Sequence record: NC_031126.1
Direction: 5' to 3' (one strand)
Length of the DNA: 64,000 nucleotides
Shown in pieces: positions 1,591-59,805 of the stretch; positions within the stretch are counted from its first letter, which is position 1, and every line of letters begins with the position of its first letter. The notes beneath the pieces were generated by a model. The model saw nothing but the letters and a program-made list of their open reading frames with translations, ran no database searches and was not told the origin of the DNA. A program made the position numbers and the translations under genes.

Positions 1591-2016
1591 ATGTTTGGCT
1601 TCTTGAAAAAACGTGCTTCTCGCTCTGTTACCGAAATCAAAAAATTCGACAAACGCGACCTGGCACAGGCTGTTGTTAACGCAGCATATCTGGTAGCTTA
1701 CGCCGATGGCGAGCTGGAAGCATCTGAGAAAGCAAAAATCGAACAAGTGCTGCGCGCTAACCCGGTACTGTCTAACTTCCAGGGTGAACTGAACCAGATC
1801 GCTGGCACCATCATTGCACAGCTGGATGCAGACATCGGCATTGGCCGTCGTGCTGCCCTGCGTGAAATCGCCGATGTGAAGGGTGACCAGCGTGAATGCG
1901 AAGACGTGCTGGACGTAGCTATCGCTATCGCTAAAGCTGACGGTGAAGTTGAGCCGGAAGAAGAAGCGGTACTGAAACAAATCGCCGAAGCTCTTGGCCT
2001 GCGTTACGACGCCTAA
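1591..2016 (+). CDS. terB: TerB-family (tellurite-resistance-like) protein
   Basis: Two TerB motifs, AYADGELEASEK and AKADGEVEPEEEAVLKQIAEALGL; AAAGGA SD before ATG 1591. Confidence 0.88.
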   Translation: MFGFLKKRASRSVTEIKKFDKRDLAQAVVNAAYLVAYADGELEASEKAKIEQVLRANPVLSNFQGELNQIAGTIIAQLDADIGIGRRAALREIADVKGDQRECEDVLDVAIAIAKADGEVEPEEEAVLKQIAEALGLRYDA

Positions 2017-2019
2017 GCC

Positions 2020-2199
2020 ATGAAGCTGAAAACCAAGTTGTACATCGCGGCCGCACTGCTACTGATGTTGCTTGGCAACTTCGTAGGACGGGCATTCACG
2101 TTGCTCGCCTACGTCGCTGTAATTGGCTTAGTAGCATATCTCGTGTGGCCACTCATTAAGACTTATGCAGCCAAGGCTAAAGCTAAGGTCAAGTCTTAG
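2020..2199 (+). CDS. small membrane protein (59 aa)
   Basis: MKLKTKLYIAAALLLMLLGNFVGRAFTLLAYVAVIGLVAYLVWPLIKTYAAKAKAKVKS*: two hydrophobic segments and a basic tail; starts 3 nt after the terB stop. Confidence 0.7.
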   Translation: MKLKTKLYIAAALLLMLLGNFVGRAFTLLAYVAVIGLVAYLVWPLIKTYAAKAKAKVKS

Positions 2200-2249
2200 T
2201 GTGATTGCGGGGAGGGAACATTCTCCCCGTACGCTCGGGGCAAAAAAAT

Positions 2250-3032
2250 AACGAACGCTGGGGTTGGTTTTCCAACTGCTGCCGTGAGTACCACTCATTT
2301 GGCCGGGCTGGTATCCCGTCTGATACGGTATTAGCTGAGACCCAGCGCATACCAGTAAGTCGCTGATAGCCGGTTACACAAAGCACTACACCACAGAGTA
2401 GCGTGGGGGTAGGTAACTGACCGTAAACTAACTTACTCGATGAGAGAGCCCTTATATATGCAAGGACTAAAAGAGTTGGTGCGTGAGTTCATTCGTTCTT
2501 TAAAGAGCGTGTGGTCTTTCGTACGACACTGGTCACTTGCCCATTACTGGCTTACAGGCGGTGGGAGTTCCCGTGAGGGTTCCCGATACAGACATCTTCC
2601 TGCGTGGAAATATGTGTCCGTAACGGACAGGCCAGCACCGGACTGCTAAACCGCTAAGCTAACGCCTGTAATACTACAATCTGAAAATCTTTGATGGGAT
2701 TAAGTTCCTATAAAGTGTCGAAGCGGCTGTGTGTCGCTGGAGATAACCCCCCGTCGTGGGTCAAGTTATCCCAATGGTAATGTGAAAGAGGATGGTGCTT
2801 GGAGACGCTAAGACCGGCGGATACGCTGGCTCAGAAGAAGAAGTCCATCATCCTCATTCTCACTCTGAAAATTCAATTACAGTTTTATCCCTATATATGT
2901 CAATGATAACAAAGCGAATTCTAACGAACGAGTTTTCTTTGTTATATGTCGGGGAACCTCGTTGTTGCTGCACAGGGCGTTGCGTTGCGTACGCTTGCCG
3001 GTGTGTAGGAGTTGCGAGGTGCCCTGGCACCT
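2250..3032 (+). ncRNA. candidate large structured non-coding RNA(s)
   Basis: No convincing ORF. Many helices found by eye: 2256-62/2341-47, 2552-60/2663-71, 2631-36/2825-30, 2742-47/2765-70, 2788-97/2846-55, 2906-14/2937-45. Lies directly upstream of the tRNA array; strand assumed from context. Confidence 0.5.
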
Positions 3033-3037
3033 AATTT

Positions 3038-3123
3038 GGCGCGGTACTCAAGCGGTCAACGAGAGCAGACTGTAAATCTGTTGCCTTCGGGCTTCGTAGG
3101 TTCAAATCCTTCCCTCGCCACCA
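3038..3123 (+). tRNA. trnY: tRNA-Tyr(GTA)
   Basis: Anticodon loop CTGTAAA; long variable arm; T-loop TTCAAAT; ACCA end; one acceptor mismatch (C5-U68). Confidence 0.93.
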
Positions 3124-3129
3124 AATTCT

Positions 3130-3204
3130 AGGGGTATAGCCAAGCGGTAAGGCCCAGGGCTTTGATCCCTGTATGCTCTGGTTCAAATCCAGATGCCCCT
3201 TCCA
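3130..3204 (+). tRNA. trnQ: tRNA-Gln(TTG)
   Basis: Acceptor AGGGGTA/TGCCCCT; CAGGG-CTTTGAT-CCCTG; CCA. Confidence 0.92.
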
Positions 3205-3210
3205 TTTTAT

Positions 3211-3287
3211 TGTCTCGTAGCTCAGTTGGTCAGAGCGCTCGCCTGATAAGCGGGAGGTCAGTGGTTCAAGTCCACTCGAGACAACCA
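3211..3287 (+). tRNA. trnI: tRNA-Ile(GAT)
   Basis: Acceptor TGTCTCG/CGAGACA; loop CTGATAA; ACCA. Confidence 0.95.
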
Positions 3288-3291
3288 ATTC

Positions 3292-3367
3292 GGTTCTGTA
3301 GCTCAGTCGGTAGAGCACGCCACTCATAATGGCGCGGTCGTTGGTTCGATACCAGCCGGAACCACCA
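3292..3367 (+). tRNA. tRNA(CAT), elongator Met or Ile2
   Basis: Acceptor GGTTCTG/CGGAACC; CGCCA-CTCATAA-TGGCG; ACCA. Met versus lysidine-Ile2 cannot be resolved by eye. Confidence 0.9.
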
Positions 3368-3491
3368 GTCACGAGAACGTAACCCTGCGGTTTGGTTAGT
3401 CACCTATACTAGCGGTTACGCGATGCCTTTATCTGCGGGGCGTGAAATAGTGCGAGAGGTAGACTCTCTCAAGCAAGCAGAGGCAAATTCA

Positions 3492-3566
3492 GGTGCTATC
3501 GTCTAGCGGCTAGGATACGGCACTTTCACTGTCGGTACACGAGTTCAAATCTCGTCGGGAATGCCA
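3492..3566 (+). pseudogene. tRNA-Glu(TTC)-like gene with unpaired acceptor stem
   Basis: D, anticodon (CGGCA-CTTTCAC-TGTCG) and T arms (ACGAG-TTCAAAT-CTCGT) are normal and it ends GCCA, but acceptor strands GGTGCTA and CGGGAAT do not pair. Confidence 0.65.
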
Positions 3567-3572
3567 AACAAT

Positions 3573-3648
3573 TCTCCCATCATCTAGCGGTCTAGGATCG
3601 CCGCCTTTCGAGCGGTTAACCGGGGTTCAAATCCCCGTGGGAGAACCA
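3573..3648 (+). tRNA. trnE: tRNA-Glu(TTC)
   Basis: Acceptor TCTCCCA/TGGGAGA; GCCGC-CTTTCGA-GCGGT; T-loop TTCAAAT; ACCA. Confidence 0.9.
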
Positions 3649-3654
3649 AATTAG

Positions 3655-3820
3655 CAGGAGAGCTTTAGGGGTTCGTTTTCAGACGCCTAGGTTGTGGAAC
3701 GTTGCATCCCGCGTCAAGCCGGATGTAATTGGGGTTCGACTCCCCACTAGGATGCCCTAAAGGTAGCGCCGTCACAGGCGAGCAACTAACACGAGGCGTC
3801 ATGACACGCCTACTCCTGAG
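3655..3820 (+). ncRNA. structured RNA containing an internal tRNA-like T-arm module
   Basis: Perfect T arm TGGGG-TTCGACT-CCCCA (3730-46) nested in CCTAG/CTAGG, CTTTAGGG/CCCTAAAG and CAGGAG/CTCCTG helices; 8-bp stem in place of an anticodon arm. Confidence 0.6.
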
Positions 3821-3827
3821 TAACAAT

Positions 3828-3910
3828 GGAAGTAAAGCTCGCTGCTTCGGAAACTCATGGTGAAAGACCCGTGACCTTCCAGGCCGGTGCTATACCGGAT
3901 GCTTCCACCA
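3828..3910 (+). ncRNA. atypical tRNA-like RNA with acceptor stem and ACCA end
   Basis: GGAAGTA/TGCTTCC-ACCA plus three internal hairpins; T-loop is TGCTATA and there is no canonical 7-nt anticodon loop. Confidence 0.6.
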
Positions 3911-3916
3911 ATTAAT

Positions 3917-3994
3917 GGTGTACGTAGTTCAGTTGGTTAGAATTCTGGCTTGTGACGTCGGAGGTCGAGGGTTCAAGTCCCTCCGTACACCCCA
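3917..3994 (+). tRNA. trnH: tRNA-His(GTG)
   Basis: Encoded G-1:C73; acceptor GTGTACG/CGTACAC; loop TTGTGAC; CCA. Confidence 0.93.
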
Positions 3995-3999
3995 ACTTT

Positions 4000-4075
4000 A
4001 GTGCCGTAGTCGAGTGGCTAAGACGCTCCCCTGTCACGGGAGAGATCGTGGGTTCAAACCCCATCGGCACTGCCA
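4000..4075 (+). tRNA. trnD: tRNA-Asp(GTC)
   Basis: Acceptor AGTGCCG/CGGCACT; CTCCC-CTGTCAC-GGGAG; GCCA. Confidence 0.95.
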
Positions 4076-4080
4076 TATCT

Positions 4081-4168
4081 GGAGAATTGACCGAGAGGCC
4101 GAAAGTGCTCCCCTGCTAAGGGAGTGGTCCTTAGGGGCCCGAAGGTTCGAATCCTTCATTCTCCGCCA
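4081..4168 (+). tRNA. trnS: tRNA-Ser(GCT)
   Basis: Acceptor GGAGAAT/ATTCTCC; loop CTGCTAA; long variable arm; GCCA. Confidence 0.95.
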
Positions 4169-4173
4169 AACAA

Positions 4174-4266
4174 TGAACGTGGCCTTTTCATTTAAATTAG
4201 CATGCTATGCGGCATTGCTCCAGCAAATGAGAATCAGTCCTGCCTTAAATGGTAAGCGTTCACCCA
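4174..4266 (+). ncRNA. CCA-terminated structured RNA (non-tRNA)
   Basis: 7-bp terminal stem TGAACGT/GCGTTCA followed by C-CCA; inner CATTTAA/TTAAATG and GGCA/TGCC helices; no T-loop. Confidence 0.5.
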
Positions 4267-4271
4267 ACAAA

Positions 4272-4337
4272 GGTTTCTCCCGGTCGGTCTGGGGTCGTCA
4301 GTCAAATGGCGAGGTTGGTTCAAATCCAGCAGAAACA
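4272..4337 (+). pseudogene. degenerate tRNA-like sequence
   Basis: Canonical T arm GTTGG-TTCAAAT-CCAGC and GTTTCT/AGAAAC acceptor; anticodon arm TCGTCA-GTCAAA-TGGCGA has a 6-nt loop; no CCA. Confidence 0.5.
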
Positions 4338-4338
4338 A

Positions 4339-4439
4339 GAACGATGAAGTTAGAGGCATAAACACCCGACTCATAATCGGATAGCGGGTTACCCGGCGGG
4401 TAACTTGGTCGCAGGTTCGAATCCTGCCTTCGTTCGCCC
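4339..4439 (+). tRNA. atypical tRNA(CAT) with long variable arm
   Basis: Anticodon arm CCGA-CTCATAA-TCGG; T arm GCAGG-TTCGAAT-CCTGC; extra stem GGTTACCC-GGC-GGGTAACT; acceptor GAACGATG/CTTCGTTC; ends GCCC, not CCA. Confidence 0.65.
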
Positions 4440-4445
4440 TATTAC

Positions 4446-4522
4446 GGTTCCATAGCTCAGTTGGTTAGAGCGGCTGCCTGTTAAGCAGTAGGTCCCTGGT
4501 TCGAGTCCAGGTGGTACCGCCA
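4446..4522 (+). tRNA. trnN: tRNA-Asn(GTT)
   Basis: Acceptor GGTTCCA/TGGTACC (one U-U); GCTGC-CTGTTAA-GCAGT; GCCA. Confidence 0.93.
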
Positions 4523-4525
4523 CAT

Positions 4526-4595
4526 TTTGTGTTGCCCTTGTCCCGAAAGACATTCCGGAAAAATATCATTCATGGTCGGGGGTAACACAGAACCA
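4526..4595 (+). ncRNA. CCA-terminated long hairpin RNA 1
   Basis: TTTGTGTTGCCCT/GGGGTAACACAGA 13-bp stem then A-CCA; inner TGTC-CCGAAA-GACA hairpin. Confidence 0.55.
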
Positions 4596-4598
4596 AAT

Positions 4599-4662
4599 TC
4601 CGGTCACCACACCTTTTGTCGCCACCTGCATGGCTGCCTCCGGGGTGTGGTGGCTGGAACCA
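4599..4662 (+). ncRNA. CCA-terminated long hairpin RNA 2
   Basis: TCCGGTCACCACACCT/GGGGTGTGGTGGCTGGA ~16-bp stem then A-CCA; inner GCCA/TGGC hairpin. Confidence 0.55.
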
Positions 4663-4758
4663 TCTTTAGCCGTTTGTTTTTTTCTTAACTTACGGATAGA
4701 GCCCCAGTGGGGGAAAAGCCACTAACAACAATAGAAATAGCAATAGAAGGAAAGAACC

Positions 4759-5268
4759 ATGTTTACAGTACAACGTATCGTTAAAGGTACCCGCTGCCCT
4801 ATCGACCTGGAAGAACCGGCACTTGGTGACCGTGATTCTGACGTCTTTAAGGAAGCAATGAAATTGGCCCAGGAATCCATTGCCATGCAAAGCAACACGG
4901 TCATGGACATGAATCTGGCCGGTGCCCGAGAAATCATCGGGATGCAGGAGAAGTTCAATACTCCTGAAGGCGTAGACGAAGAAACCGCACACGCCTTGTG
5001 CCAAGAATTTACTGCGGTGGACTTGGAGTTCCACTACGACGACTCTAAACCTGAAGAACAACCACAACAGGCTGTTCTGTTGGGTTCCCGTCCTGGCACA
5101 CGTTCTTTGGACGAAGCCATCGGGGTCCTGTCGTATTCACTTGAAGACCGCCGCGACCAGGAGAAACCGGAAACGTACGTGCAAGCGTGCCGCTACGAGT
5201 TCTTCTATCCAGGTGATCAAGTCTACGTAACAAACCGTTACGGTAAGACGGTCGATTCCCTGCGTTAA
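4759..5268 (+). CDS. hypothetical protein (169 aa, acidic)
   Basis: Clean ORF with AAGGAAAG SD. Confidence 0.8.
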   Translation: MFTVQRIVKGTRCPIDLEEPALGDRDSDVFKEAMKLAQESIAMQSNTVMDMNLAGAREIIGMQEKFNTPEGVDEETAHALCQEFTAVDLEFHYDDSKPEEQPQQAVLLGSRPGTRSLDEAIGVLSYSLEDRRDQEKPETYVQACRYEFFYPGDQVYVTNRYGKTVDSLR

Positions 5269-30080: not shown

Positions 30081-30402
30081 AACTGATTATCGTTTCCAAA
30101 ACTTCGGCGACGGCCATAGATGTCGGTACACGCAGGGTTTGGAAATCGTCAGTGTTGAACATCATCGGCTCATCAATTCGGTTGATGAGCATGATCGGAT
30201 ATACTTGGTTAGGTTCCCACCCTACTAATTTACAGTAGGCGTAAAAGTTATGTATCTCAGGCCAAGCAAATCTCGGATCAATGGGGATAGTCTGAGTGTC
30301 TTTGTGATTACGCAGATACTCTGTGTGGTCTCGTAGAACGCGTCGTTTCACACTGTCCAGCGAGGGTACTACTTCATCCAAGGTAATGAACTTTTCGAGC
30401 AT
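30079..30402 (-). CDS. small LysM-like (T4 gp53 / P2 gpX-like) protein
   Basis: AAGGAG SD; YPIMLINRIDEPMMFNTDDFQTLRVP fits the I-x-x-N-x-I-x-D/E-P...L-x-I/V-P pattern. Confidence 0.6.
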   Translation of the reverse strand: MLEKFITLDEVVPSLDSVKRRVLRDHTEYLRNHKDTQTIPIDPRFAWPEIHNFYAYCKLVGWEPNQVYPIMLINRIDEPMMFNTDDFQTLRVPTSMAVAEVLETIIS

Positions 30403-36530: not shown

Positions 36531-36801
36531 GGCACTGTGTCAGGACCCGAAAATCAATCGGGCCTTTCACTATTACATGGTGACTGAACACTATGCTGGA
36601 ATGTTTATCGAACAACGCGGGTTACGCTACCATGTAACCCGCACGTCGAATATACGCGGTACCGCCGCGTACGAACTGTACACCTACACTCTCTGGACGG
36701 ACAACCCAGCCGGGAGTGTAGACCAAAACCCGAAAATGGCCTATGCTCTCTTCTCTGAGAAATGGCATGATTGGGTGACTGTTCCACATAACGTATCTTA
36801 A
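36418..36801 (+). CDS. hypothetical protein (127 aa)
   Basis: AAGGA SD before ATG 36418; overlaps the helicase 3' end by 113 nt. Confidence 0.6.
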   Translation: MITPPLPAEPEAPYVGLSLQKFLENVLRAYPGVEDVAKALCQDPKINRAFHYYMVTEHYAGMFIEQRGLRYHVTRTSNIRGTAAYELYTYTLWTDNPAGSVDQNPKMAYALFSEKWHDWVTVPHNVS

Positions 36802-59756: not shown

Positions 59757-59805
59757 GTGTTTTACGTTATCGCCCAGTGATATGTACACAACGAGGGACA
59801 AGCCA

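Follow-up and report, generated by a model that had tools for sequence, protein, structure and literature searches.

A conserved folded RNA with an embedded small reading frame upstream of the tRNA array of SPN3US-like jumbo phages

What is encoded just upstream of the transfer RNA (tRNA) array of Erwinia phage vB_EamM_ChrisDB (KX397366, Machinavirus), an SPN3US-like jumbo phage? The window analyzed here is the first 64 kb of this genome, such that genome and window coordinates are identical. An earlier note on this DNA described positions 2250-3032 as a densely paired candidate noncoding RNA (ncRNA) of ~800 nt, free of open reading frames (ORFs). GenBank lists two “hypothetical proteins” in the interval, gp8 (2205-2366) and gp9 (2440-2649), and tRNA-Tyr starts at 3038. 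The interval consists of two separate elements: a conserved module of ~560 nt on the + strand (2299-2859), which is indeed a structured RNA, and a promoter-like motif with a structured leader (2877-3037), to which the last ~140 nt of the interval belong. Positions 2250-2298 are a spacer left by a deleted TAXI gene. The module is not free of ORFs, as a 63-codon frame (2458-2649) is conserved in every homologue; it is therefore closer to a structured mRNA or an RNA with two functions than to a purely noncoding one.

The region was matched by blastn in 48 phage records, all from ~240-kb phages of Erwinia, Salmonella, Escherichia, and Proteus. The fetched loci cover four genera (Machinavirus, Seoulvirus, Erskinevirus, and Wellingtonvirus), and contigs from IMG/VR and metagenomes were added through motif scans. 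After de-duplication, 24 distinct sequences from the four genera and metagenomic contigs were left for the structure and ORF comparisons. One IMG/VR match (L026), located within a coding region without tRNAs, was rejected as a chance match. Covariance models were built for the 3′ part and the 5′ domain of the module; the two find exactly one copy per phage and no second match within the 64-kb window. Searches of 5,426 genomes of E. coli and of 72,556 plasmids found no similar DNA, and the motif was not found in 185,579 GTDB species genomes. We read the module as a vertically conserved RNA gene of SPN3US-like jumbo phages.

The fold is well supported by covariation. The RNAalifold consensus of the 24-sequence alignment contains 123 pairs, and parsimony on a maximum-likelihood tree counts 108 independent double changes with pairing kept, vs 2-17 when the 3′ partners are slid by 1-3 columns. 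After realignment of all hits, 96.0% of the cells are paired in the 3′ part and 96.8% in the 5′ domain, compared with 35-50% and 34-43%, respectively, in the slid controls (34-50% taken together). Both sides change in 20 of the 38 pairs of the 3′ part and in 18 of the 26 pairs of the 5′ domain (slid, 1-7), the covariation scores are 0.416 and 0.656 (slid, ≤0.095), and none of 500 shuffles reaches the observed percentage paired or score. Support is concentrated in P1, the hairpin of the 5′ junction, and its two stacked helices (Table 1); the hairpin at 2722-2738, helix 2740-2745/2767-2771, and both helices of the 3′ hairpin are also well supported. The dense + strand helices first noticed by eye are thus non-random, and the covariation behind them is strong across the 24 relatives. 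Many G/U-rich candidate pairings of a naive scan were rejected.

The strand of the folded species can be read from the wobble pairs. G-U cells number 283 vs 61 A-C cells, and one G-U pair, G2795-U2848 in the 3′ hairpin, is invariant; therefore, the + strand RNA is the one that folds. The minimum free energy (MFE) z-scores of the whole module are weak (−1.96 for the + strand and −0.73 for the − strand), ranging by part from +0.7 for the 5′ domain to −3.99 for the 3′ hairpin. The evidence is therefore comparative rather than thermodynamic.

Does this RNA belong to a known family? Rfam 15 returns only tRNAs for the whole window at the gathering score, and cmscan gives no match in the module, either for positions 2000-4800 at E ≤ 1 or for 2290-2900 (611 nt alone) at E ≤ 10. 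The permissive scans returned a single hit, a minus-strand match of 11.7 bits that is attributed to chance. ARAGORN finds no transfer-messenger RNA (tmRNA) in the window, and literature searches found no paper on the module. The earlier note, which could match no family by eye, had suggested either an analogue of the phage-associated RNAs GOLLD and ROOL or an undescribed class. A large, ornate, conserved RNA does lie beside the phage tRNA array, yet it matches neither the GOLLD nor the ROOL model, and no family model matches it at any of the three stringencies. The module appears to belong to an undescribed RNA family.

Its limits are given by its neighbors. Upstream lies a TAXI-family solute-receptor gene in most phages, a different small gene in Seoulvirus, and tRNA-Cys in one locus (L015), in which the module starts 74 nt after the tRNA. 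Downstream, depending on the phage, lies a promoter-like motif, a ParB-like gene, another coding sequence, or a tRNA gene 6-7 nt away. The last arrangement occurs in three lineages; the gene that follows is tRNA-Gly in Stratton and Asesino and tRNA-Leu in L021. Since the flanks differ around a conserved block, 2299-2859 is a discrete module.

Within this module, the 5′ domain combines a hairpin (P1), a multi-helix junction, and a pseudoknot. Three invariant G-C pairs of P1 adjoin its 7-nt loop (2308-2314, consensus YUGRURU), and the three inner helices of the junction show 17, 6, and 4 independent double changes. In some relatives, an extra hairpin is inserted after 2330. The pseudoknot between the P1 loop and a strand downstream of the junction is 99% paired in the 24 sequences with 4 independent double changes, vs 24-62% and 0 events in slid controls, and occurs as GGUA/UACU, GAUG/CAUU, AAUG/CAUU, and GAUA/UAUY. 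Its 3′ strand lies 10-20 nt upstream of the AUG of the ORF, directly before a Shine-Dalgarno-like AGGUGA or GAUGAG, such that the 3′ strand of the folded domain abuts the ribosome-binding site. Translational operators have this arrangement; since no second fold finds support, regulation is something we infer. No known aptamer was matched in the Rfam scan of 2290-2900 (E ≤ 10). A 7-bp kissing pair between the P1 and P3 loops, present in ChrisDB and SNUABM9 only, and the pairing AGCCGG/CUGGCU (2368/2547), with 0 double changes, were rejected.

The small ORF begins downstream of the non-conserved ATG at 2440 that GenBank uses as the start of gp9. Its frame, which is open in 24 of 24 homologues, runs for 55-64 codons from an ATG to an invariant UAA, and the other two frames contain 0-4 stops each (19 sequences checked). 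Length differences 3′ of an invariant Trp are multiples of 3. In 14 within-clade pairs, the N-terminal half has proportions of synonymous (pS) and nonsynonymous (pN) differences of 0.52 and 0.19, giving a pN/pS of 0.36, compared with 0.79 and 1.70 in the shifted frames. The C-terminal half has a pN/pS of ~1 at a pS of 0.09; both classes of sites are equally frozen, as expected if RNA structure is the constraint. The ORF is probably translated. AlphaFold2, run on a 12-sequence alignment, returns one helix at residues 2-33 with a predicted local distance difference test (pLDDT) score of 75-85, while residues 36-55 score <50. The peptide is thus predicted to consist of an N-terminal helix of ~33 residues and a disordered C-terminal stretch of ~30 residues encoded by the structured RNA. 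It has no match in Pfam or the Protein Data Bank (PDB), its only PHROGs match is phrog_26199 (annotated as of unknown function), and two very large protein searches confine the family to the clade. Two long proteins that match the peptide in 5-9 short stretches were taken for repeat or low-complexity matches. Readthrough or frameshifting past the UAA was rejected on finding no conserved downstream frame. Likewise, TATATATG at 2453-2460 was dismissed as an internal promoter; it occurs in the ChrisDB subgroup only, has the wrong spacing to TTAC, and would start transcription so as to remove the AUG.

Between the 5′ domain and the second half of the ORF, a variable linker of ~100 nt carries the start codon and the protein-like first half of the frame. 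The central domain lies in the second half, and at its end a hairpin loop presents the stop codon; three 3′ hairpins follow. Hairpins of the central domain are clade-specific and covary within clades. The two-tier hairpin 2563-2583 is capped by a GNRA loop, as had been seen near 2570 (CCC-GTGA-GGG), and reads GGGA..CCC-GUGA-GGG..UCCC or GGCA..CUC-GUGA-GAG..UGCC among clades. The CUC-GUGA-GAG version is that of the Machina group, and Seoulvirus has GUAA or GCAA loops. The perfect 9-bp pairing TTACAGGCG/CGCCTGTAA (2552-2560/2663-2671) is unchanged in 17 of the 24 homologues, but the Erskine/Wellington clade has a different arrangement. By contrast, the proposed long-range pairing GCCAGC/GCTGGC (2631/2825) is unsupported, as both strands are engaged in better-supported local helices. 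In the inner helix of the stop-codon hairpin, the change from G-C to A-U represents two independent events on the tree.

In the 3′ hairpin, the 10-bp stretch GAGGATGGTG/CATCATCCTC (2788/2846), already picked out in the single sequence, is real and shows 13 independent compensatory changes by tree parsimony, and the outer and inner helices as a whole show 16 and 12 independent double changes. Between them lies an invariant, purine-rich internal loop, GGAGACG (2801-2807)/AAGAAG (2835-2840), and the terminal loop in ChrisDB is GAUA. No U-tract follows the hairpin. Further upstream, the “cassette” hairpin exists in three unrelated sequence versions among the relatives (window 2739-2772; homologous positions in L002-L036). 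The cassette types cut across the phylogeny, as in Stratton vs Asesino and Machina vs pSal-SNUABM-04, and this distribution across genera suggests exchange by recombination between co-infecting phages.

Table 1. Positions of the RNA module, the small ORF, and the neighboring elements in the window
Feature	Position	Strand	Remarks
P1 hairpin	2299-2307/2315-2323	+	15 independent double changes; both sides change in 5/9 pairs
Pseudoknot	2310-2313 (GGUA, P1 loop)/2434-2437 (UACU)	+	found in tree-based scan for extra helices
Multi-helix junction of 5′ domain	2324..2425	+	closing helix 2324-2329/2420-2425
Hairpin in 5′ junction	2342-2348/2359-2366	+	conserved loop CAYACCNGUAAGY
Stacked helices of 5′ junction	2371-2377/2413-2419, 2386-2389/2409-2412	+	enclose conserved ACAAAGCA bulge 2378-2385
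Small ORF	2458..2649	+	63 codons plus UAA 2647-2649
Central domain	2529..2711	+	tentative long-range helix, 9-bp helix, GNRA hairpin, hairpin 2615-2629, helix 2678-2684/2695-2701
Stop-codon hairpin	2634-2636/2658-2660 (AGC/GCU), 2639-2641/2651-2653 (CGG/CCG)	+	100% paired in 24 sequences
Hairpin	2722-2727/2733-2738	+	loop UGUGU; 10 independent double changes
Variable cassette hairpin	2739-2772	+	12 independent double changes
3′ domain, long irregular hairpin	2784..2859	+	outer helix 2784-2800/2841-2859, inner helix 2808-2819/2824-2834
Promoter-like motif TTAC-N15-TATG (TTACAG...TATATATG)	2877..2899	+	outside RNA module
TTAC-N15-TATG sites	819-841, 2877-2899, 30230-30252, 36573-36595, 59762-59784	+	
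Structured leader of tRNA array	2906..3023	+	hairpin 2906-2945, long irregular stem ~2947-3023

How might one RNA accommodate both the fold and the frame? The interpretation tentatively preferred here, to which we give a little less than an even chance, is that the module is an undescribed RNA doubling as the mRNA of a small protein, in which the pseudoknot gates translation, the remainder has a role at the RNA level, and the 3′ end is made by tRNA processing. The RNA would be produced within the transcript of the tRNA region and cut out by tRNA processing; in the three lineages with an adjacent tRNA, RNase P cleavage of that tRNA would set the 3′ end of the module. The 5′ pseudoknot domain would act as a translational operator that regulates how ribosomes reach the small ORF. 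The folded 3′ part may be a binding or stability platform and would therefore have an RNA role of its own beyond coding. Conserved RNA structure supported by covariation, as is typical of a dual-function RNA, is present.

Several observations weigh against this interpretation. A local hairpin that might compete with the pseudoknot is without covariation support, and any “switch” would be speculative. Neither a promoter nor a TTAC-N15-TATG motif was found upstream of the 560-nt module, which is probably the distal part of a transcription unit starting upstream of tRNA-Trp. With five phylogenetically independent pairs, the codon-position bias of the ORF is marginal (p ~0.05), Shine-Dalgarno-like sequences are weak or oddly spaced in several lineages, and the invariant residues in the second half of the peptide are all accounted for by RNA constraints. 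In the central part (2526-2716), the cross-clade consensus is weak, and the long-range helix 2529-2538/2702-2711 is plausible but tentative: it is 97% paired with only 2 double and 9 single-side changes, and a second RNAalifold run missed it. The 3′ hairpin, at 79-90% identity vs 78-81% in neighboring genes, is no more conserved than they are, and its case therefore rests on covariation and the invariant loops. Finally, the transcript ends, stability, and translation of the module are all points that we infer.

Other explanations compete with this one. The module could be an ordinary, heavily structured mRNA in which only the small protein matters, the 5′ pseudoknot serving as an operator without any RNA function in trans and the 3′ hairpins serving as stabilizers, as a terminator where the unit ends, or as a site of RNase III-type processing. 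The conserved ORF with its protein-like first half and confident helix, the pseudoknot adjoining the ribosome-binding site, the position at the end of a unit with a new promoter-like motif next, and the resemblance of the 3′ hairpin to an irregular processing hairpin all agree with such an mRNA. However, ~370 of the 560 nt are noncoding and harbor conserved junctions and invariant loops (ACAAAGCA, CAYACCNGUAAGY, and GGAGACG/AAGAAG) beyond the needs of stabilizers, selection at the amino acid level is absent from the second half of the ORF, and the 3′ hairpin lacks a following U-tract; this explanation is rather unlikely. The opposite explanation, that of a pure ncRNA, treats the peptide as functionless and the frame as tolerated or kept for a reason unrelated to protein, e.g., remodeling of the fold by ribosome transit. 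It draws on the marginal codon periodicity, the weak Shine-Dalgarno-like sequences, the coincidence of all invariant residues past residue 25 with RNA helices, and the confinement of a peptide family with no known domain to one clade. A frame that stays open in all homologues while the other two acquire stops, a retained ATG, indels in multiples of three, and the low pN/pS of the variable first half make it unlikely.

Far less probable still is that the module is a very divergent tmRNA, group I intron, RNase P RNA, GOLLD, or ROOL missed by the models. The likenesses are superficial: with tmRNA, the pseudoknot ahead of the ORF and the hairpin loop containing the stop codon; with group I R/S or RNase P P4 strands, the sequences AGAAGAAGUCC and GGAGAC; and with GOLLD, a location beside tRNA genes. 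The permissive Rfam and ARAGORN searches described above are silent, and the module has no tRNA-like end and an ORF that starts at an AUG of its own. In addition, its 3′ hairpin has a covarying outer helix that pairs the strands needed as P6′ and P9 in a group I intron, and the flanks vary between phages (TAXI gene, tRNA, or other gene), leaving no exons to join. A DNA-level element, i.e., a replication origin or a packaging or recombination site with inverted repeats mimicking RNA helices, is the least credible explanation. It would suit a position near coordinate 1 of the deposited genome and the apparent exchange of hairpin cassettes between phages, but the excess of G-U over A-C cells and the invariant G-U pair speak for RNA, neither a pseudoknot nor wobble covariation specific to one strand is meaningful in duplex DNA, and GC skew does not change at the locus.

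The module shares features with several known systems. Like GOLLD and ROOL, it is large, has many helices with conserved junctions and loops, and is phage-encoded in a tRNA gene cluster. Unlike them, it matches neither Rfam model, has a length of ~560 nt and a conserved ORF, and occurs only in SPN3US-like jumbo phages of Enterobacterales; GOLLD and ROOL form oligomeric cages. Its likeness to tmRNA, which is also encoded by some phages rich in tRNA genes, extends to a structured RNA with an internal frame, an upstream pseudoknot, a stop codon in a hairpin loop, and structured elements thereafter, and is one of resemblance only. By ARAGORN and Rfam, the module has no tRNA-like domain, T-arm, or CCA end, and it terminates in a long irregular hairpin. 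Its frame of 55-64 codons has its own conserved ATG, unlike a tmRNA tag frame, which lacks a start codon and is entered at a resume codon, and its peptide ends in ..QAPAH and variants, unlike the usual tmRNA tag ending, ..ALAA.

Dual-function RNAs such as Staphylococcus RNAIII/hld and SgrS/SgrT are likewise single transcripts in which a conserved RNA fold is combined with the message for a small peptide, and RNAIII, at ~514 nt with many hairpins, is similar in size. There is no sequence or structural homology to either, and the ORF of the module differs in entering the folded core, such that half of the peptide is dictated by RNA constraints. A pseudoknot 3′ strand next to the Shine-Dalgarno sequence and start codon is a classic layout for control of 30S binding, and the module shares it with the T4 gene 32 leader, E. 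coli rpsO/S15, and thrS; its domain is much larger (~140 nt with a multi-helix junction) and has no competing structure backed by covariation. The T4 tRNA cluster likewise encodes stable non-tRNA RNAs (species 1 and 2, rnaC/rnaD), which are released by tRNA processing. Compared by description only, the T4 RNAs are shorter (~120-140 nt) and have no ORF.

Other likenesses were examined and dropped. For a group I intron, the R/S and P7 resemblance fails as helix 2788-2797/2846-2855 pairs the strands that flank the R/S-like sequences, an incompatible topology; there is also no Rfam intron match, and the variable flanks contain no interrupted gene. No type A or B model of RNase P RNA matches, and the AAGUCC-like strand pairs locally within the 3′ hairpin; the P4 (AAG-U-CC) likeness spans only 7 nt in reversed strand order, with no model match. 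A resemblance to the GTPase-associated center of 23S rRNA (UGGCUUAGAAGCAGCCAUCAU) involves different pairing partners, and those to the thiamine pyrophosphate (TPP) “CUGAGA” and B12 box are not conserved among homologues.

The second element of the interval begins with the TTAC-N15-TATG motif. Its spacing is the same in Machinavirus and Seoulvirus, and it occurs 5 times in the window vs 1.76 expected, always on the + strand. Three of the five sites begin with TTACAG, and two precede tRNA genes; one site is located between gp2 and tRNA-Trp. The late promoter of phiKZ is TATG, with the G as +1, and its middle promoters carry AAanTTACc near −24 (PMC4666361). On this comparison, TTAC-N15-TATG is a candidate promoter class of the phage RNA polymerase resembling the phiKZ middle/late promoters; if the motif works as in phiKZ, transcription would start at G2899. 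We read 2877-2899 as the promoter of the tRNA array and 2899-3037 as its structured leader. The leader has an MFE of −61.5 kcal/mol (z = −5.86), runs into tRNA-Tyr, and has both sides changed in 13 of 35 pairs between Machinavirus and Seoulvirus. The pairing ATAACAAAG/CTTTGTTAT (2906/2937) and the hairpin 2957-3019, which the earlier note had counted with the large RNA, are thus real (z = −5.9, with covariation) but belong to this separate leader.

The array itself harbors further tRNA-related sequences on the + strand. At 3827-3910, a cloverleaf-like RNA (MFE z = −3.3) combines an acceptor-type stem of 8 bp (UGGAAGUA/UGCUUCCA) with three arms; the last of these, a hairpin of 6 bp, takes the position of the T-arm, and a CCA is encoded after it. 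It is called by neither ARAGORN nor the Rfam tRNA model and may therefore represent a tRNA-like gene of non-canonical type within the array. The locus 4340-4435, scored at 39.6 bits by the Rfam tRNA model but missed by ARAGORN, folds with CAU in the anticodon loop and with a variable arm that is rich in GC and unusually long; in relatives, the array is annotated with ~120-nt “tRNA-Ile(aat)” genes. A partial tRNA match at 3501-3555 (29.9 bits, model positions 10-63) and a tRNA-like stretch with a good T-arm at 3684-3753 are probably decayed tRNA genes in gaps of the array.

The surroundings of the module have also been rearranged. ChrisDB lacks the ~0.83-kb TAXI-family TRAP solute-receptor gene that separates the RNA module from the DUF3927 gene in the fetched Machina-, Erskine-, and Wellingtonvirus relatives (L003-L010); only its last ~20 nt are left, in a scar at 2200-2298. 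The annotated gp8 spans this scar and the P1 hairpin, is not conserved, and is a spurious gene. In the Machina subgroup (L006-L008, locus ~2065-2400), the promoter-like motif and tRNA-Tyr are separated by an inserted small ParB-like gene; therefore, the downstream neighbor of the module varies within one genus. The TerB-domain gene gp6 (1591-2016, +) is a homologue, at 41-71% identity, of phage P1 TciA and of TerB genes in many unrelated phages, and in these jumbo phages it sits in the tRNA region beside the DUF3927 membrane peptide. As a synteny anchor toward other phages, TerB gave only P1 TciA-like genes in unrelated contexts and was abandoned.

Annotation of the module is inconsistent: SPN3US, Caitlin, and pEa_SNUABM_4 carry no feature, the Machina group and Asesino carry a “hypothetical protein”, and ChrisDB carries the spurious gp8. 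Large RNAs that form complex, conserved structures are rare, and most classes known so far proved to be ribozymes, ribonucleoprotein scaffolds, or nanocages. It is possible, at well short of an even chance, that the module represents a new large folded RNA class of the nucleus-forming SPN3US-like jumbo phages, an RNA machine or platform that also encodes a possible partner peptide of helix-plus-tail architecture. If so, it may bind a host or phage translation or RNA-processing factor, assemble into a higher-order particle as ROOL and GOLLD do, or mark transcripts of the tRNA region for handling between the phage nucleus and the cytoplasm, and it would be a viral counterpart of tmRNA or RNAIII in logic, unrelated by descent. 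The locus belongs to the tRNA region, which is translation-related, of jumbo phages that form a nucleus and in which RNA biology is almost unexplored, and the phage group is genetically tractable, as SPN3US in Salmonella has amber-mutant genetics. In the module, one sequence stands under two codes, the first half of the frame evolving as protein and the second as RNA.

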